This document shows, one piece after another, positions 12,765 through 54,995 of a stretch of DNA of 64,000 nucleotides; the first letter of the stretch is position 1; every line of letters starts with the position of its first letter. A program made the position numbers and the translations under genes. Below the pieces are notes generated by a model that worked only from the letters and a program-made list of their open reading frames with translations, was not told the DNA's origin and did no database searches. The stretch lies in sequence record MK250021.1; one strand, written 5' to 3'.

Positions 12765-13140
12765 NNNNNNNNNNNNNNNNNNNNNNNNNNNNNNNNNNNN
12801 NNNNNNNNNNNNNNNNNNNNNNNNNNNNNNNNNNNNNNNNNNNNNNNNNNNNNNNNNNNNNNNNNNNNNNNNNNNNNNNNNNNNNNNNNNNNNNNNNNNN
12901 NNNNNNNNNNNNNNNNNNNNNNNNNNNNNNNNNNNNNNNNNNNNNNNNNNNNNNNNNNNNNNNNNNNNNNNNNNNNNNNNNNNNNNNNNNNNNNNNNNNN
13001 NNNNNNNNNNNNNNNNNNNNNNNNNNNNNNNNNNNNNNNNNNNNNNNNNNNNNNNNNNNNNNNNNNNNNNNNNNNNNNNNNNNNNNNNNNNNNNNNNNNN
13101 NNNNNNNNNNNNNNNNNNNNNNNNNNNNNNNNNNNNNNNN
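12765..13140. other. Scaffold gap (376 N)
   Basis: Run of N. Confidence 1.
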
Positions 13141-13284
13141 TGAAAAAAGTCTACATTATTTTAAATTATTTTTTAATTATTTTTAATGTAATTTTAACTA
13201 ATAAAATAGACTTTTAATTAAGACTTTAATATAATTATGCTATATAAATATAAGAAGAGAAAATTATACATATATAAAAGTAAA

Positions 13285-14310
13285 ATGAAAGTTGATATAA
13301 CATTTGACAACAAATGGTTTGTTGTCAGTTCAAATTATCTATTTGAACTTAATGTTATACGCAGAGCTTTTACAAGAGAAATTCCAAATGCGTGGATGTT
13401 AAAGAAGATTACTGACATACAAATTACTGATAGAGAATTCATGAACAAATATAATATGATTTCTACTAATTTGTGGTTAGAAATTATTAAGGTTGCTAAA
13501 AAGTTCAATATAGCAATGGAAATGACTCCAGCTGCACAGAATTATTTAAATTAGTTTACATTAAAGTTTGAAGATTTTAAGAGTTATATAGATGATATTT
13601 TTGAAGGTGCAGAAACAGATGAAGGAAAAGAATTTAGACCATATGATTATCAAATAAAAGCGGCGTATACATTATTAAAATATAAAAAATGTTGTGGAGA
13701 AATTTCTACTTCAGGTGGAAAAACATTAATTTCATTCATGATATTTAAATATTTAATTGATACACAAGGTATAGATAATATTCTATATATTGTTCCATCA
13801 GTTGACTTAGCTAACCAATCAGCTGAACAATATGAACGATATGAGTCTTACCTTAAGAAACATAATCATAATTGGGAAATAGGAATTCTTAGGTCTGGTT
13901 TAACAAAGAAACAAAAAGAAAAAGTCGAATCATGTAACATATTGTTTGGAACTTTTCAAAGTCTTTGTAAACGTAAAAAAGAGTTTTTTGATAGATTTGA
14001 ATCATGTATAATAGATGAGTGTTGTCATCCAGATACATTAATAACAATGGCAGATGGAAATAAAAAGAAAATTTCTGATGTTGTAGAAGGCGATAAAGTA
14101 TTTACGTATAATGAAAACACAAAGAAAAAAGAAATACATGAAGTTGAGTATGTATATAAAAATTTATCATCACATGATGTAATATATGAATTAGAAAAAG
14201 AGGATGGTACATTTATTAAATTAACAGGTAATCATAAAGTTTTAACAAAAAATAGAGGTTATGTACGTGTTGATGATTTAAATATAGATGATGATATTTT
14301 AGAGTTTTGA
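13285..14310 (+). CDS. uvsW: UvsW-like SF2 helicase, N-terminal half fused to split-intein IntN; code 15
   Basis: PYDYQ, Walker A EISTSGGKTL, IIDE then intein; one TAG at 13552; ends TGA 14310; alternative ATG 13237. Confidence 0.9.
14020..14310 (+). mobile_element. Split intein N-fragment (96 aa)
   Basis: Block A CCHPDTLITMADG directly after DE; block B TGNHKV; ends DDILEF-stop. Confidence 0.9.
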
Positions 14311-14318
14311 TTTTTTAC

Positions 14319-14358
14319 TTCTAACATGATGTTTAATTATTTATTCATCATGTTAGAA
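14319..14358 (+). promoter_or_regulatory. 13-bp hairpin occluding the endonuclease start codon
   Basis: ttctaacatgatg (14319-31) / catcatgttagaa (14346-58) perfect inverted repeat; ATG 14350 in 3' arm. Confidence 0.65.
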
Positions 14359-15567
14359 GATATGGGTCTAAGAGAAGTTAATATGGATCAATTAAATGAT
14401 AAATCAATTTTATAGAATGTATTAAAAAATGTAGATATGTCTATACATGTTTGGAATAAACATGATTTTCTTATCAATAATAAAATTAATATAGATTTAT
14501 ATAACAATGTATTTTTTAATTTTATCAAAAAATTAAGATTAGATGTTTATAATTTTTTAAAAGATAATTATACGGTAGATACAGTATAGGAATTATATAA
14601 CATGGTTTATGGTAAATCATCTATATGTAAAAAATGTGGTAAAAAATTAGAATTTATAAGATTTAATTAGGGATATAAAGATTGTGATAATTGTTATAAA
14701 TTAGAAGCAAATAAATTAGGTACAAAAGACAAAATAATAGATTATATTAATAATACACAAAATACTATACCACTTATATAGTTTATATATAAACATCCTG
14801 TTTTAAAAATAGTTTTTTCAAAATTTCCTAAAATTAATACAGAAGAAGAATTATATTTATTTTTATATAATGATAAACCACATACATGTGAATGTTGCGG
14901 TAATAAAACAAAGTTTGTTAGATTTAGACCATTTCATACATACTCTGTATGGCCATATCATTAGTTTTGTTCAATTGAATGTAGAAATAAATGGTGGGCA
15001 TAGAAACAGTGTGAAAATAATACAATATATAGAGCAAATGAAGAAACTTTAAATAGAGTTAAAAATGAGAATAGTATTAGAATGAAATAGAAGATTAAAG
15101 ATGGTGAATTTACACCATGTTCAACTAATTCCTGGTGCCATTCTAGATATAAAATAAAATTTATTCAAAATAATAAATTAGTTACAAAATTTTTAAGGTC
15201 TTCATGGGAAGTTATATTTCAATTATTAAATCCTAATTTATTATATGAAAAGTTAAGAGTACAGTATATAGGAAAAGATAATAAATTACATAATTATATA
15301 GTTGATTTTATAGATATTGATAATAAAATTGTATATGAAGTTAAGCCTGATAGTTGTAAAGAAGTTAGAGATAATATATTAAAAAATAATGCTTTAATTA
15401 ATTGGTGTAAACAAAATAATTATGAAATGCATTATATAGATGAAAATTATTTTTAGAAACATATTTTTAATGTTTCTTTATTAAAATATACAGATAAAGA
15501 ATATAAAGATAAATTAGTAAATTTAATTAAAAGATATAAAACATTTAAGGTTGATTATGAAAATTAA
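14350..15567 (+). CDS. Putative PD-(D/E)xK homing endonuclease with Zn-finger motifs, 405 aa; code 15
   Basis: CKKCG, CECCG, FCSIEC; RSSWE...YE...HNYIVDF...VYEVKP; about 8 in-frame TAG; absent from ORF track; alternative ATG 14326. Confidence 0.8.
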
Positions 15568-15673
15568 GAATATTAGAGTTTTAGAATATAAAGGAGATGT
15601 ATATAATTTGAGAATCAAAAGTGAGAATGAGTAGAATCATAATTATTATGCTAATGATTTATGTATAAGTAAT
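15557..15673 (+). mobile_element. Split intein C-fragment (39 aa)
   Basis: Block F VYNLRI, block G HNYYAN..ISN, +1 Cys at 15674; TAG at 15632. Confidence 0.9.
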
Positions 15674-16534
15674 TGTCATCATGTAGGTGCTGCAAAAAGT
15701 TTTAAGGATATTTTACAAAAAACAGAAAATTTAAAATATTCTATAGGTGTAACAGGTACATTTCCTAAAGAAAGTATGTATGAGAATTTATATATACAAT
15801 CTATTATAGGACCTGTAATATATAAGTTAACAGCAAATCAATTAATTAATACAGAGAAAAGAGGAACACCTATATATGCAGTAATTCAATATCTTAAATG
15901 GGCAGATCAAAAAACAAAGGAAACAATGTATATCTATAGAGCAAATAAAAATCCTATGGATATAGGCGCAGGTAGTAAGGTTCTGAAGATCGAAAGGAAA
16001 ACGGTTAATGAATCATATACAAGATTAAAGTATATTTGTGATCAAGTTATCAAGACAAAGAAAAATGCTTTGGTACTATTTGGCGATATTAAATATGGAT
16101 ATGGTAGAAAAGTATATGATTATATAAAAGATAATTCAGATAAAAATGTTTATTATACAGATGGAAATACACCAAATAAAACAAGAGATTATTATAAAGC
16201 AGAAATGGAAAAAGATACTTCTGGAAATACAGTGATAGTGGCGTCTATCAATACATTTGGTGAAGGTATCGATATTAAAAATCTTTGGTCTATTTTTTTG
16301 GTTGATACAGCGAAGTCTGAAAGATTAGTAAGACAAATATGTGGTCGTGGAATTCGTTTGTATCCAGGAAAAGATAAAGTTGTTATTTTTGATTTCGTAG
16401 ATGATTTGAGATATTCTGCAGATCCTAATAAGAGATATAAAGATAATTATTTATGGAAACATGGTCAAGAGAGAAAGAAAATTTATCTTGAACAACATTT
16501 CCCTGTATATGAGCAGAAGATAGATTTTAAATAA
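15557..16534 (+). CDS. uvsW: Split-intein IntC fused to helicase C-terminal half; code 15
   Basis: MKIKNIRVLEYKGDVYNLRI...HNYYANDLCISN then CHHVG, VTGT, TFGEGIDI, RQICGRGIR; different frame from N-half. Confidence 0.9.
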
Positions 16535-16591
16535 TTTAAGAAATTATCGTTTAAAGAATAAATAATTAAACGATAATTTTAAATTTTTATT

Positions 16592-18073
16592 ATGTTGTTA
16601 AGTGAAGTCTTATATATAGCAAAAAATATAAATAAATATAAATCTCTTAATGAATCACTTAAGTCTAATATATTATCTGATATATTTCATAAGTTTGATT
16701 ATTCTAATATAACTATTGAACCTGTTAATAAAAACTATTATATAGGTTATACTGATAAGGGCGTTTCATTTTTTGATGTCAAATTTGAATATCAAAGGTT
16801 AGCAGAAAGAAATTAGTTAACACAAGATATGTGTGATACAGTGGAAGGAAGATAGAAAATTATTAATTGTGATTATAAAAAGAAAAAACGTAAGAAATTA
16901 TGGAATGGAACTTATGAAGATAATGGAATAATATATATGATTATGGAAGCTATCAAAAATAAGTCAACACATAAAATCGGTTTATCTGATATAACAGATT
17001 CAGAATTAATAACTATATCACCAATAGACGCAAAGAAAAAAATATATAAAACTGGATTACAATTTTGGGTTGATTATGATAATAATCTTAGAGCTGTAGT
17101 AATAGATAACACAATAATATTATATATTTAGCAATTAAATCAATATAATTCATGGTTGAAACCAAATCCAGATTATCACGAGAAAACAGATTTCTCTACA
17201 TTTGCTGATAATAGGAATGATGAGTATTTAGAAAATTTTATAAATAAAGCATTTATTAAAATACCAGTTTATAATATATTAACATCTAATGTAGAATTAA
17301 AGAAAGAATTAGGTGCAAATAATGTTAAATCATTATAGAATGTTCCAGGAATATCAAAAGTATATGTGGTAAATACAGAAGGTATGGAAAATTCCAATAT
17401 AGAGGAAAAACTAAAAACAAGAAGAGATTATAAAATATTTTTAGAGAGTCAAATAGATCTTAATAAGAAAAATATTGAAAGATATTAGAATGAATTAAAA
17501 ATTAGGCGTTCGCAAGGTGTTGATTCTAAAATTATAAATAAGATTTATGATTTCCTTGATGTTTGTATGGATACAACAATAGAATTATAGAATTTAGATA
17601 ATGATGTATTGACAAATAAATCCGCCGATGATTTTATAGGAGATACCTATTGGCATTCTGCACCATTAGATTATGTATATTCATCTGCTTTAAAACGAAT
17701 ATATCCAGATAGAAGTTTTTTTGATTCAAAAGTAAGAAATATGTATGGTAGAGGAACACATATGGAAACTAATTGGTCTTTTAATTCTATAGGAGATTGC
17801 TTGGTTGTGGCTAATTTAAAAGTTGAAAAATGTATAGAATATTCATAGTCTATAATTGATAGATATGACAAATATAATAATATAAAGAATAAAGCTGATA
17901 TTTCTTAGGATGAAATATTATATGAGTTGAATATATTAAAATCAAAGTATAAAGAATTAGAAGATTTTCTATCTTATAACTCATCTGTATATAATGAAAT
18001 AAGAAGGCAATTAGATAAAGCTAATATAGATCTTGATAAGATAATGACAAAAATAGATAATTTTCAATTTTAA
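16592..18073 (+). CDS. Hypothetical protein, 493 aa; code 15
   Basis: Four track fragments in one frame joined at TAG; TAA 18071. Confidence 0.8.
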
Positions 18074-43546: not shown

Positions 43547-43618
43547 TGGGGATTAGTATAGTGGTCAGTACAGAGGTCTCTAAAACCTTTAGGCCGAGTT
43601 CGAGTCTCGGATCCCCAA
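43547..43618 (+). tRNA. Amber suppressor tRNA (anticodon CTA), Gln-type
   Basis: TGGGGAT/ATCCCCA acceptor, loop ctCTAaa (43580-82), T arm ccgag-ttcgagt-ctcgg. Confidence 0.95.
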
Positions 43619-43660
43619 CAATTAAATGACATAAGTAATATTTTAAAGATTTGATGAATT

Positions 43661-52014: not shown

Positions 52015-52087
52015 GGTCCGTCTGGTGTAATTGGTAACATGACAGATTGTGGTTCTGTTGTTCAGGGTTCGAGCCCCTAACGTGACC
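52015..52087 (+). tRNA. tRNA-His(GTG), irregular acceptor stem
   Basis: acaga-ttGTGgt-tctgt; G-1:C73. Confidence 0.8.
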
Positions 52088-52106
52088 CAAAATATTATTA
52101 ATATTT

Positions 52107-52183
52107 AGCGTAGTGGCCCAGTTGGTCTAAGGCACCTGTTTTGGGAACAGGTTAGATCGCACGTTCGAATCGTGTCTACGCTA
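52107..52183 (+). tRNA. tRNA-Pro(TGG)
   Basis: agcgtag/ctacgct; cctgt-ttTGGga-acagg. Confidence 0.92.
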
Positions 52184-52297
52184 CAGAATAGAGTTCTTAT
52201 GTTATCCTTACATAACTAAAAGAACTAAAACTTAAGATGGTAAGGCATCTATATAATGGAAGTTCACGCCCAAGGGAAGATTTATAAGTTATAATTT

Positions 52298-52372
52298 ACT
52301 CTGTTAACTCAATTGGATTAGAGTATTTCGCTACGAACGAAAAGGTTGTGAGTTCGATTCTTACACAGAGTA
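52298..52372 (+). tRNA. tRNA-Arg(ACG)
   Basis: actctgt/acagagt; tttcg-ctACGaa-cgaaa. Confidence 0.92.
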
Positions 52373-52381
52373 CAAGTAAAT

Positions 52382-52454
52382 ATCTCTATAGCTCAAAAGA
52401 ATAGAGCAGTTCTCTCCTAAAGAACAGATAACAGTTTGATTCTGTTTGGAGATA
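52382..52454 (+). tRNA. tRNA-Arg(CCT)
   Basis: atctcta/tggagat; gttct-ctCCTaa-agaac; T loop TTTGATT. Confidence 0.85.
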
Positions 52455-52541
52455 CAAACAAAATTAACATTATTAATATAGACTTTTATCTATTAATTGA
52501 ATATATTATAATGTAATTTGAATTTTAAATACTATTAAAAT

Positions 52542-52950
52542 GTAGGGGAGTAGAGTTCCCATCATTTAAAGAGTTTCGAGAAGAAGGTATTGTATGTAAA
52601 AGCATTAAGTTTCGTTTAGCTGACGAAATGTGACCACGCGGTGATGGTATTCATGTACATAGGTCCATCCGTATAACTTCAGGGAATCGTAAGCATTAAT
52701 CTTGGCGAGTACAGTTTTTAGTCTGAAATGACGAATTTTCCTACTGGTTGCTCAATATGATATTAAGAGTCGGAGATAATTATTTGTAAGTTCCACAATT
52801 ACGAGAGGAAAATGGAATTAAGTTGAAGGAATAACGTGATTATTCTTGGTGTGATTAGGAGAACGAAAATAACCAGTATGTATGGTGTACGTGTGCATAC
52901 AGAAACAAAGCAAATAATAGCCCTTAGAGAATTTGCCGAGTAAAGGACAT
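52542..52950 (+). ncRNA. Unidentified structured non-coding region
   Basis: GC-richer, several hairpins, closing stem 52542-49/52737-44. Confidence 0.45.
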
Positions 52951-52971
52951 TAATAGTATTTTTATTTATTT

Positions 52972-53049
52972 GCAGTATTGGTGTAGCTGGAGGCGCATTC
53001 CTGACTTCCACTCAGGCGGCTTGCGCGAGTTCGATTCTCGCATACTGCT
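52972..53049 (+). tRNA. tRNA-Gly(TCC)
   Basis: gcagtat/atactgc; cctga-ctTCCac-tcagg; U73. Confidence 0.92.
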
Positions 53050-53123
53050 CATAATAAGGTAGAGTATCAATGAATGATAGAGAATAAGTTCCTGTCTGAG
53101 ATCAACCTATCTGTAGTATTTAG

Positions 53124-53149
53124 ATAATTTTATGTATACATAAAATTAT
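53124..53149. repeat. Perfect 26-bp palindrome
   Basis: ataattttatgta|tacataaaattat. Confidence 0.9.
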
Positions 53150-53258
53150 AACGAAGTTTATATTACCTGTAGTCGTAATATTCAAATCGTTCGTTGACAT
53201 AGTTATTCCGTGATGTAGTAGAGAGTTATAATCAGCATATAACAGACGGAATATTTTT

Positions 53259-53331
53259 GCGGAAGTATATCAATGGTTAGATAGATACGTTGCCAACGTA
53301 TAGGTTGTGAGTTCGAGTCTCATTTTCCGCT
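53259..53331 (+). tRNA. tRNA-Gly(GCC)
   Basis: gcggaag/tttccgc; atacg-ttGCCaa-cgtat; U73. Confidence 0.92.
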
Positions 53332-53474
53332 CTATAAACGTTTCGAGGTTTTAAAGTTGAATGTACCACCTTGCGCTTGTGTTACTATTCACCTTTGAGT
53401 AATAGTAAAAAACTTATGGTATCAAGGATGTTTTCTACGTTGTTACATCCATTTTTTTGAATATGATAGAATAT

Positions 53475-53621
53475 GAGAGTCAATACAGCAAATTAAATTG
53501 ATAGATAATGTTTGAAGATTATACACAAAAAGACTCTTGAATCAAATTATAATGGGAGGCAATACAGCAAATTTTGTATTAAGGATTATTTTGCTAAAAT
53601 AATATTCTATACGCCTCCTGA
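53475..53621 (+). repeat. Two tandem structured AATACAGCAAATT elements
   Basis: 13-nt identical core, different but self-complementary closing stems, each followed by TGA. Confidence 0.75.
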
Positions 53622-53626
53622 TACTT

Positions 53627-53710
53627 GACGAGTTGCTGAGAATTGGTTAATCGCACGATCTGCAAAATCGTTGGTCATATGACATGTCGGTTCGAGTCCG
53701 ACACTCGTCT
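53627..53710 (+). tRNA. tRNA-Cys(GCA) with long variable arm
   Basis: gacgagt/actcgtc; acgat-ctGCAaa-atcgt; 14-nt variable region; U73. Confidence 0.88.
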
Positions 53711-53743
53711 CTTTAGATTAATATTTTAAAATACTATTATAAG

Positions 53744-54004
53744 ATGAAGAAATTATTTTCTTTTATATTTTGTACAATAATGATTACATCATTATTTGGA
53801 TGTGCAACAAAACAAGATACAATTAGTTACCTTGATAATTATGTACATAAAAATATTTCTGAAAATTGTATAAACATTTTCAGTAATCAAAGATATAATG
53901 AATATATTGATACTGTTACTAATATTAAATATTATGTTTATATAGATTATAATAGTAACATCAATATAATAGATAAAAGATTTCCGAGGTATACAGCTCG
54001 TTAA
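53744..54004 (+). CDS. Small putative lipoprotein
   Basis: MKKLFSFIF...LFGC lipobox-like. Confidence 0.65.
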   Translation: MKKLFSFIFCTIMITSLFGCATKQDTISYLDNYVHKNISENCINIFSNQRYNEYIDTVTNIKYYVYIDYNSNINIIDKRFPRYTAR

Positions 54005-54302
54005 AAGAGGTTGACTTGTATATTCTACATTACCTACTGTATAACAATATATGAGTGTACATGTGAAAAGATACACCATGTTCTATTAATATAAAAATGT
54101 ACATATATAGGGTAACAATTATATTAATATCAGATGCATGACATATATGAATATAATAACGAATTCGTGAAATGACTATTGTTTTTAGTTGCTTGGAAAC
54201 GGCGAACTTAGTTTTATCAATAGAGGAAGTATAATATTAAAACAGTTAAATGTAAATCTTTCTGAGACAATGGGGACAACTTGTAGTAAGAGAGTATTTT
54301 TA

Positions 54303-54417
54303 GCTAGTATAGTTTAGTGGCAAAACACCCAAATCCCAGGGATAAGAGATGGTTTGAGTTGTAGTGTACAATACAATATACAGAAGATTTTAGTGAGTTC
54401 GATTCTCACTGCTAGCT
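54303..54417 (+). ncRNA. tRNA-like RNA with expanded anticodon/variable region
   Basis: Acceptor gctagta/tgctagc, D arm and T arm intact; ~65 nt between D and T arms. Confidence 0.7.
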
Positions 54418-54423
54418 CAATAT

Positions 54424-54551
54424 GAAGTGCGTAGTTTAAATGGTAAAACATCCTTTGAGTAGGACTCTGACGAGAGATAGATAACAATGCTAGACTCTAT
54501 TTAATTCCATTGTTTTATTAATGAGTATAGGTTCGAATCCTATGGTACTTC
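54424..54551 (+). ncRNA. tRNA-like RNA with multi-stem insert replacing anticodon arm
   Basis: gaagtgc/gtacttc, D arm and T arm atagg-ttcgaat-cctat intact; ~76-nt insert. Confidence 0.7.
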
Positions 54552-54841
54552 CAAATTTATATAGATAAAAAGATTCTGGTGATTAGATAAAACATTATAA
54601 GAAAAGAGAAAAAACTTAGGTAACTGCAGATAACTAAGGGTCGTAAGAGTATATGAAGAAAGATGAACTATGGATACCTCCTTATAATGCGTTTTATCAA
54701 TAATTAAAGTAGTCTATAATATAAGTTCATTAACGTTATAGAAAAAACGAATATTGATAAGTCTACTATGCAGATGGGGCATTGAGAATGCCGTATAGTT
54801 CTAAAGCATCGTAAAACAGTTTATTTATATATTTTTAATAT

Positions 54842-54916
54842 GGCTAGATAGCTCAGTTCGGTTAGAGCGCGTGATTCATATCCACGAGGTCGTGTGTTCG
54901 ATCCACACTCTTGCTA
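54842..54916 (+). tRNA. tRNA-Met or Ile2 (CAT)
   Basis: ggctaga/tcttgct; loop ttCATat; T arm gtgtg-ttcgatc-cacac. Confidence 0.85.
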
Positions 54917-54995
54917 CAGTGTTTTTAGTTGTTTATTAATGATTTGAGATATATCAATTTTTGGTATATCTCTTTTTTATTTAGAAAATAATTTG

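Follow-up and report, generated by a model that had tools for sequence, protein, structure and literature searches.

A UvsW-like helicase gene of Prevotella phage Lak-B2 cut within motif II by a predicted split intein and a TnsA-like nuclease gene

The closest described relatives of the arrangement reported here are the fractured genes of Dassa et al. (2009; PMC2677866), found at the gp41-1, gp41-8, NrdJ-1, NrdA-2, IMPDH-1, DnaE, ligase, and terminase loci. These loci are of phage origin and consist, on one strand, of an extein joined to the N-terminal intein half (IntN), a free-standing endonuclease, and the C-terminal intein half (IntC) joined to the second extein, with a DNA-metabolism enzyme hit at a conserved motif and a hairpin near the endonuclease start. 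Two other systems are similar in part. The Ssp and Npu DnaE inteins are naturally split class-1 inteins with cysteines at the first intein position (Cys1) and at the first position of the C-extein (Cys+1), and their trans-splicing restores an essential DNA enzyme. In the T4-like Aeromonas phage Aeh1, the DNA-metabolism gene nrdA is split by mobE, a free-standing homing-endonuclease gene, and function is retained; the NrdA pieces reportedly work without ligation (Friedrich et al. 2007; Crona et al. 2011; PMC3045599). Here we describe a locus within a 64,000-nucleotide stretch of sequence record MK250021.1 (the window), from Prevotella phage Lak-B2, at which the gene for a UvsW-like helicase of superfamily 2 (SF2) is read as three open reading frames (ORFs) and is cut within helicase motif II (IIDE/CHH, the slash marking the break).

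The Lak-B2 locus is like the fractured genes of Dassa et al. in all of the features listed above. Unlike them, its host gene is a UvsW-like SF2 helicase interrupted at motif II, which is absent from the gene types listed there; its nuclease is a TnsA-like PD-(D/E)xK enzyme rather than a GIY-YIG or Vsr-like/EDxHD one; its genome reads TAG as sense; and empty, mini-intein, half-fused, and fractured alleles are all available for comparison. The two DnaE halves are encoded at loci far from each other and have no endonuclease between them, whereas the Lak halves are about 1.25 kb apart in a unit that still looks mobile. Aeh1 nrdA has no intein and its pieces assemble non-covalently, whereas complete intein halves flank the break in Lak. 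Homologous units of three overlapping ORFs occupy the identical site (NDE/CH) in Salmonella phage S16 (NC_020416; gp114/gp114.1/gp115), in STP4-a, and in Proteus phage PM2. The S16-type unit uses the standard code, has a penultimate His (AHN) at the end of its intein, and has no stem-loop at the nuclease start; its nuclease, of 291 amino acids (aa), lacks the N-terminal extension of the Lak protein, has ExR for ExK, and is 34% identical to the Lak nuclease over the aligned part.

Positions 13150–16620 of the window are 100% identical to Lak-B2 (MK250021) and 99.7% identical to Lak-B4, B7, and B8. The G+C content of the window is 25.8%, and many long ORFs are gained across it when TAG is read as sense. 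With TAG translated as Gln, the helicase locus resolves into three ORFs on the + strand, which comprise the N-extein with IntN, the nuclease, and IntC with the C-extein:

13285–14310, + strand: N-half ORF; SF2 helicase N-domain, IntN, and then the TGA stop at 14308–14310
13285–14019, + strand: N-extein of the UvsW-like SF2 helicase; 245 aa, motifs I to II, ending ...CIIDE
14020–14307, + strand: IntN; 96 aa, beginning CCHPDTL (Cys1, block A), with block B TGNHKVLT and an ILEF end
14350–15567, + strand: nuclease ORF; 405 aa with eight in-frame TAG codons, free-standing and homing-endonuclease-like
15557–16534, + strand: C-half ORF; IntC followed by the C-extein, in a frame different from that of the nuclease ORF
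15557–15673, + strand: IntC; 39 aa, blocks F and G (DVYNL..., HNYYAN...), with a Ser-Asn end (ISN)
15674–16534, + strand: C-extein; 286 aa, beginning CHHVG (Cys+1) and completing motif II (DECH), stop codon at 16532–16534

The N-half start (MKVDI at 13285) is kept in Lak-A1, Lak-C1, and L015, a diverged Lak-A-like genome, and the alternative ATG further upstream, at 13237, does not recur in Lak-A. Translation from the in-frame ATG at 14326 would yield a nuclease of 413 aa. IntC has its own ATG (15557), 11 nucleotides (nt) within the 3' end of the nuclease ORF, and the expected length of the spliced helicase is 245 + 286 = 531 aa. A 376-nt run of N, either masked or a gap, lies at 12765–13140, directly 5' of the helicase promoter region. 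A first-pass annotation, made by a model from the sequence alone, had read the locus as a three-part fractured gene with a natural split intein. All of its coordinates hold, including the TAG codons at 13552 and 15632 and the spliced length of 531 aa, and its reading is supported by the anatomy of the locus, the catalytic residues, selection, a docking model, and the allelic states described below.

The N-half matches the Pfam profiles ResIII (4.1e-14) and DEAD (4.1e-13), and the C-half, whose C-extein holds the second RecA-like domain, matches Helicase_C (2e-7). Among solved structures, both exteins match T4 UvsW best (PDB 1RIF and 2OCA for the N-extein; 2OCA, at 5e-19, as the best PDB match of the C-extein). 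Two RecA-like domains and motifs I and II (DExH) are present, as in a UvsW-type SF2 helicase. Because sequence similarity to T4-like UvsW is low (29–40% over tblastn segments that take in the intein halves), we use the safe label "UvsW-like". The break falls exactly at DE/CH of motif II, the site named in the first-pass annotation, and intein-less Lak alleles run uninterrupted through it (...CICDE/CHH...).

The N-half also matches the Pfam profiles Intein_splicing (E = 1.9e-8) and Hint (E = 3.5e-6). PF14890 scores 41.5 bits at the locus in Lak-B2, above its cut-off, and 34.7 bits on the N-half ORF alone, slightly below the cut-off of 35.8. IntN matches NrdJ-1 and DnaB inteins in the PDB (phmmer), and its nearest solved intein relatives are the Ssp DnaB mini-intein and the NrdJ-1 intein, the latter from one of the original fractured-gene loci (PMC2677866). 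The Cys1 codon (14020–14022) directly follows IIDE. Both the DE/C junction and the block B TxxH occur in 48/48 split N-half relatives checked, and the longer TGNHKVLT motif is kept in S16, PM2, L015, and L011. IntC ends ...CISN/CHHVG (junction at 15671–15676), with N/C at this junction in 7/7 C-halves compared. The break lies between blocks B and F, the canonical endonuclease insertion point of inteins: IntN ends 22 residues past the end of TGNHKVLT (29 past its Thr), and IntC starts 13 residues ahead of DVYNL. Identity to the S16 counterparts is 54% for IntN and 42% for IntC.

The intein halves are under purifying selection as strong as that on the helicase. Between Lak-B2 and L015, a comparison spanning about 0.4–0.8 synonymous substitutions per site, the ratio of nonsynonymous to synonymous substitution rates (dN/dS) is 0.08 for the N-extein, 0.07 for IntN, 0.10 for IntC, and 0.09 for the C-extein; the nuclease is also under purifying selection, with a dN/dS of 0.25. 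The two intein halves are predicted to dock. The window IntN was modeled with five extein residues, and its partner was the L015 IntC with six extein residues, chosen instead of the window's own IntC because the latter holds a TAG and the predictor accepts code-11 proteins. The pair reached an ipSAE of 0.78 (best control 0.00) with about 200 contacts, contact agreement between runs of at least 93%, and a partner pLDDT (predicted local distance difference test) of at least 74; in calibration, 51/78 solved complexes and 2/108 mismatched pairs reached that mark.

The middle ORF, annotated at first pass as a zinc-finger PD-(D/E)xK protein, is a TnsA-like PD-(D/E)xK nuclease with Cys4 zinc-ribbon motifs. 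An N-terminal helical part with two Cys4 zinc-ribbon motifs precedes a C-terminal nuclease domain (residues 242–405). In an AlphaFold (AF2) model with a pLDDT of 92, this domain aligns with TnsA at Z 9.6 (root-mean-square deviation 3.6 Å, 146 residues aligned; VIA-align). The corresponding values are Z 5.9 for Vsr (1CW0) and Z 5.5 for I-Bth0305I (3R3P). Because these matches are much weaker than that to TnsA and the catalytic pattern is the classical D...ExK, we rejected membership in the EDxHD/Vsr-like (I-Bth0305I) family. The window nuclease by itself falls below the Pfam threshold and has no significant phmmer match in the PDB, and Foldseek alone gave no match at E <= 0.001; the TnsA match rested on probability scores and on VIA-align. 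Like TnsA of Tn7 (PDB 1F1Z, 1T0F), the Lak protein has a restriction-endonuclease-like fold and an E...D...ExK pattern, but it is not in a transposon and has neither a TnsA C-terminal domain partner nor TnsB. Like other homing endonucleases, it has modular N-terminal DNA-binding parts (zinc ribbons; NUMOD3 in some relatives).

The search for nuclease relatives returned 75 proteins, and the alignment and profile counts cover 71 members. Residues E300, D319, E330, and K332 are invariant in these 71 sequences and C180, C183, C207, and C211 nearly so; Tn7_TnsA-like_N (PF08722) is matched by 39/71 members and NUMOD3 by 5/71. All five relatives sampled for context (P0006, P0018, P0030, P0039, and P0041) lie between, or are fused to, helicase halves. 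The nuclease is single-copy in Lak-B2, with one copy plus one insignificant fragment, and a multi-copy family in this genome was rejected on that count. We infer a homing-endonuclease role from the position of the gene inside the split intein, the polymorphism with short tracts described below, and the presence of NUMOD3 in relatives.

Empty sites, sought among Lak uvsW alleles as the first-pass annotation had proposed, were found in Lak-B1, B3, B5, B6, and B9 and in Lak-A1, A2, and C1. Lak-B5, Lak-B1, Lak-A1, and Lak-C1 have one unbroken 531-aa helicase ORF across ...CDE/CHH..., and an empty-type contig is present in sequencing run X1. A second state is a contiguous mini-intein without the nuclease at the same site, as in P0133, P0081, and P0104, which are helicases of 649–673 aa from Lak-like and other sources. 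Contigs of a DNA run from pig gut and of a bovine metatranscriptome hold this state too, with an in-frame joint that connects 14301 to 15563 via 21 other nucleotides. In a third, half-fused state (P0039/L011, P0087, P0129, and P0174), IntN is fused in frame to the nuclease and IntC with the C-extein forms a separate overlapping ORF. The fused ORF (N-extein–IntN–nuclease) measures 592–746 aa in L011 (1366–4348; Logan ERR12320385), P0087, P0129, and P0174. We take this form to be a half-fractured intermediate; on splicing, IntN would leave still joined to the nuclease, as a single piece. Fully fractured alleles are those of the window, L015, L027, L028, L030, S16, and PM2. The empty, mini-intein, and fractured states all occur in Lak or Lak-like phages, and the four states can be arranged as a series leading from an empty site to a mini-intein, then to insertion of the nuclease between blocks B and F, and finally to the fractured gene. 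Dassa et al. (2009) propose such a gene-breaking route (PMC2677866).

Comparison of occupied Lak-B2 with empty Lak-B5 delimits the element and two adjoining tracts:

13999–14019, + strand: upstream co-conversion-like recombination tract; 7/21 nt differ between B2 and B5
15674–15760, + strand: downstream co-conversion-like recombination tract; 27/87 nt differ between B2 and B5

The 679 nt 5' of position 13999 contain no differences between the two phages, and 8/713 nt differ past the downstream tract. The B2/B5 difference consists of the element plus a short recombination tract, as homing with co-conversion would predict. One identical element occurs in two N-extein haplotypes, that of B2 and that of B4/B7/B8 (10 differences). 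The flank haplotypes of B2, B5, and A1/L015 are mutually about 25–33% divergent over about 110 nt, against 0–14% in the rest of the gene, and occupied L015 and empty Lak-A1 have identical near flanks. These patterns probably reflect repeated exchange at the insertion site. An IntC-plus-flank protein search for the donor of the B2 flank gave three proteins, none with the B2 flank.

Lak phages translate TAG as Gln (code 15) with a suppressor tRNA-CUA (Devoto et al. 2019; PMC6784885), and they encode release factor 2 (RF2), with TGA and TAA staying stops (PMC6784885). The corresponding features in the window, besides the TAG codons of the nuclease, are:

13552–13554, + strand: in-frame TAG in the N-extein, read as Gln (code 15)
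15632–15634, + strand: in-frame TAG in IntC, at a variable loop position
43547–43619, + strand: tRNA with anticodon CUA (TAG decoder), found with ARAGORN and labeled "Pyl" from its anticodon only

Lak-B5, Lak-A1, Lak-C1, and L015 share the TAG at 13552, which lies within an otherwise intact conserved ORF. Since all Lak alleles examined have this codon, TAG must be decoded for UvsW to be made. The IntC codon is replaced by Q, L, N, or T in relatives, or the loop is missing. A TAG-decoding tRNA is needed to translate all three ORFs. The first-pass annotation had concluded that the helicase would require amber suppression in addition to trans-splicing; the TAG codons are indeed present, but they are ordinary code-15 usage and no defect, and the call for special suppression falls away, this being the phage's own code. 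Eight further tRNA genes lie at 52015–54917 (His, Pro, two Arg, two Gly, Cys, and Met).

On the conserved sequence features and the docking model, we think it likely that the intein halves trans-splice functionally and that the nuclease is an active, or recently active, homing enzyme. The mobile unit, a putative class-1 mini-intein broken by a free-standing homing-endonuclease gene, sits in motif II (DE/CH) of the Lak-B2 UvsW-like helicase. IntN and IntC would associate into a HINT fold, and splicing would proceed by an N–S acyl shift at Cys1, trans-thioesterification to Cys+1, cyclization of the terminal Asn, and an S–N shift, ligating IIDE to CHH to give an intact 531-aa helicase. During co-infection, the TnsA-like nuclease would cut intein-less uvsW alleles, and repair from the occupied allele would copy the whole unit together with short flanks, that is, homing. 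A stem-loop that covers the nuclease start codon, together with the eight TAG codons of this gene, would probably hold nuclease output down or delay it.

Several observations weigh against this reading. The penultimate block G residue is Ser (15668–15670) and not the usual His. The docking model used the IntC of a relative, 87% identical to that of the window, and because split-intein complexes have already been solved, its success indicates likeness, not proof, and may partly be memory. The sequencing-run data are Logan contigs, which speak to presence only and not to expression or to the structure of transcripts. With near flanks that are hypervariable in all comparisons, the B2/B5 difference fits gain of the element in B2 and loss in B5 alike. 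As to the first of these points, a penultimate His is common among inteins but not universal, and we do not regard its absence as disqualifying. All members of the sub-lineage end in Ser-Asn, the contiguous mini-inteins P0081, P0104, and P0133 among them, and S16 and PM2 have His-Asn. The contiguous mini-inteins with Ser-Asn must cis-splice for the helicase to work.

The alternative that survives best, although we regard it as improbable, is that the helicase halves assemble only non-covalently, with the intein halves acting as a dimerization handle and no peptide bond being formed. It would accommodate the replacement of the penultimate His by Ser, it has a precedent in Aeh1 NrdA (PMC3045599), and it is compatible with the docking prediction, which supports association and is silent on chemistry. 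Against it, strong purifying selection has preserved Cys1, TxxH, the terminal Asn, and Cys+1, with DE/C and TxxH unbroken through the 48 split N-halves, and an ATPase site whose motif II (Walker B/DECH) still held 135 intein residues would probably be disturbed; moreover, contiguous relatives that also end in Ser-Asn can function only if they splice.

We consider it very unlikely that the insertion inactivated uvsW and left two halves that decay as pseudogenes in a 550-kb genome able to tolerate them. Intein-less alleles in sister phages do indicate that the lineage, taken as a whole, can do without the occupied allele, and in a standard-code host translation would stop short at the TAG codons early in infection. 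However, the exteins, IntN, and IntC all have a dN/dS of 0.10 or less over the divergence given above, the five occupied Lak alleles contain no frameshifts and no stops other than TAG, and the three-part layout persists in at least 48–63 metagenomic protein clusters (at the 50% identity level) and in the viable cultured phages S16 and PM2.

The breaks do not stem from misassembly. The TGA, the IntC ATG, the nuclease stop, and both TAG codons are identical in four independent Lak-B assemblies. The same three-ORF layout is found in L015 (549 kb, European Nucleotide Archive), at about 84–91% nucleotide identity per segment, and in the cultured phages S16 and PM2. In the window, the nuclease ORF is in frame with the N-half, from which it is separated by the TGA plus 5 codons (from ATG 14326) or 13 codons (from ATG 14350). 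The two frames differ in L015, which has extra stops between them, and in S16, and because the shared frame is not conserved there we regard it as coincidence. Read-through of the TGA was rejected on these grounds and because Lak encodes RF2 (PMC6784885). Rfam gave no match to a group I or II intron at the locus, only sub-threshold hairpin noise. RNA splicing was rejected in the absence of an intron model and because the nuclease-less joint seen in the RNA run is found in a DNA run too; for this reason, and because it contains 21 extra letters, the joint represents an allele at the DNA level, not the outcome of splicing. That the locus is really one contiguous nuclease-containing intein, with breaks due to assembly error, TGA read-through plus frameshift, or RNA splicing (an alternative raised in the first-pass annotation, and one to which the common frame in the window and the true fusion of IntN and nuclease in P0039 lend some color), is thus largely refuted and extremely unlikely; in every case, P0039 included, the IntC half starts from an ATG of its own and forms a separate ORF that overlaps its neighbor.

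Two inverted repeats and the ORF overlap may bear on expression of the unit:

14318–14359, + strand: perfect 14-bp stem-loop (arms 14318–14331 and 14346–14359) that buries the candidate nuclease starts ATG 14326, 14329, and 14350
16541–16579, + strand: perfect 14-bp inverted repeat, 7 nt past the helicase stop

The 85-nt stretch 14296–14380 folds at –24.7 kcal/mol (z = –5.3), and 0/200 shuffles were as good. The start-codon stem is kept in L015 even though the loop sequence differs. It is missing in S16, PM2, L027, and L030, with a weak 7-bp version in L028, and is Lak-specific. A stem over the start codons together with eight TAG codons suggests that nuclease translation is limited or late; a like argument has been made for a recoded intron endonuclease (Borges et al.). 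The repeat downstream of the helicase may be a terminator. A terminator consensus scan gave two hits, neither on the + strand, and left this low-G+C repeat uncalled. A sigma-70 promoter scan found 38 sites against 36.9 expected, the consensus being uninformative for a Bacteroidota host. The start of the C-half overlaps the 3' end of the nuclease ORF also in L015, L027, L028, L030, L011, and S16, and the overlap measured from the IntC ATG is 4–23 nt in the window, L015, L027, L028, L030, and L011, which hints that C-half translation is coupled to the end of the nuclease ORF.

The unit is not confined to Lak phages. When 1.8 billion cluster representatives were searched with IntN (phmmer), 197 proteins matched at E <= 1e-10, and among the best 150 of these at least 63 are UvsW-like N-halves ending with IntN; a stricter motif count (DE/C, TxxH, and a tail of 92–108 aa) leaves 48 split N-halves. 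Among 50,697 deposited phage genomes, 15 have a close IntN, namely 4 Lak-B, 8 S16-like Salmonella phages, 2 Proteus phage PM2 records, and 1 Streptococcus phage. In the last of these, the Gram-positive myophage vB_SagM-GXN1 (PQ819873.1), a 44%-identical IntN lies in an unannotated stretch at 123825–124103. In PHROGs, the helicase halves are classed as "DNA helicase" (16259 and 9690) and the nuclease as "endonuclease" (15427), and the genes of S16, STP4-a, and PM2 are annotated only as helicase, hypothetical, and helicase. The sequences have been public for years and are unrecognized. The first-pass annotation did not recall such an arrangement at the UvsW site; although homologous units were already in public genomes, no description of a UvsW intein was found in the literature searched, which lacks most subscription journals, so that a prior description is possible. 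The Lak papers searched contain no mention of inteins. The layout itself, a fractured gene, is known; new to that literature are its host gene and insertion site, the family of its nuclease, and its recoded setting.

Other mobile elements were observed in the same genomes and at the same locus. Lak-B2 has further Intein_splicing matches at 519915–522251, 526516–528261, 320388–320723, and 164077–164370, with matches in similar places in Lak-B5 and Lak-A1. The strongest of these extra matches (79.7 bits) covers about 2.3 kb with many stops and may be a large or broken intein, and Lak genomes seem to carry several inteins. Additional homing-endonuclease-like genes of the GIY-YIG/NUMOD3 and T5orf172/MUG113 types adjoin the uvsW halves in several relatives (L001 489–1124, which is S16 gp113; L028 739–1482; L002 350–1060, in PM2; and L011 4469–5397). 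In T4, uvsW is both the neighbor and the target of segE (PMC2988022). It seems that the uvsW locus is a hot spot for elements of this kind.

A broader reading, to which we give a low probability, is that the unit is no mere parasite but a widespread, co-evolving trio, made up of a split intein with a Ser-Asn end and a TnsA-like nuclease dedicated to it, and that in Lak phages it is wired into infection timing. The conserved TAG of the N-extein, the TAG of IntC, the eight TAG codons of the nuclease, and the start-codon hairpin would then permit helicase assembly and homing only after the phage has switched the cell to code 15. UvsW is expressed late in T4, and such timing would mirror that. A role of the TAG codons in timing helicase assembly is speculation. 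If this reading were true, the TnsA-like nuclease would add one more structural family to the homing endonucleases.

The locus adds a new host gene and site, motif II of a UvsW-like helicase, and a new type of nuclease to the small set of natural fractured genes. For annotation, S16-type helicase/hypothetical/helicase triplets, and likewise PHROG 16259 and 9690, correspond to halves of one predicted spliced protein. The at least 48 diverged natural IntN/IntC pairs, with Cys1 and Cys+1 and some with Ser-Asn ends, bear on the proposal in the first-pass annotation of a new orthogonal split intein and could be screened as orthogonal trans-splicing tools, and the cultured relatives S16 and PM2 make genetics possible. 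The system is also informative on the origin of split inteins given that all four allelic states exist, the first, second, and fourth of them in Lak or Lak-like phages, and that the switch between the empty and occupied states of Lak-B5 and Lak-B2 is bounded by tracts of about 20–90 nt.

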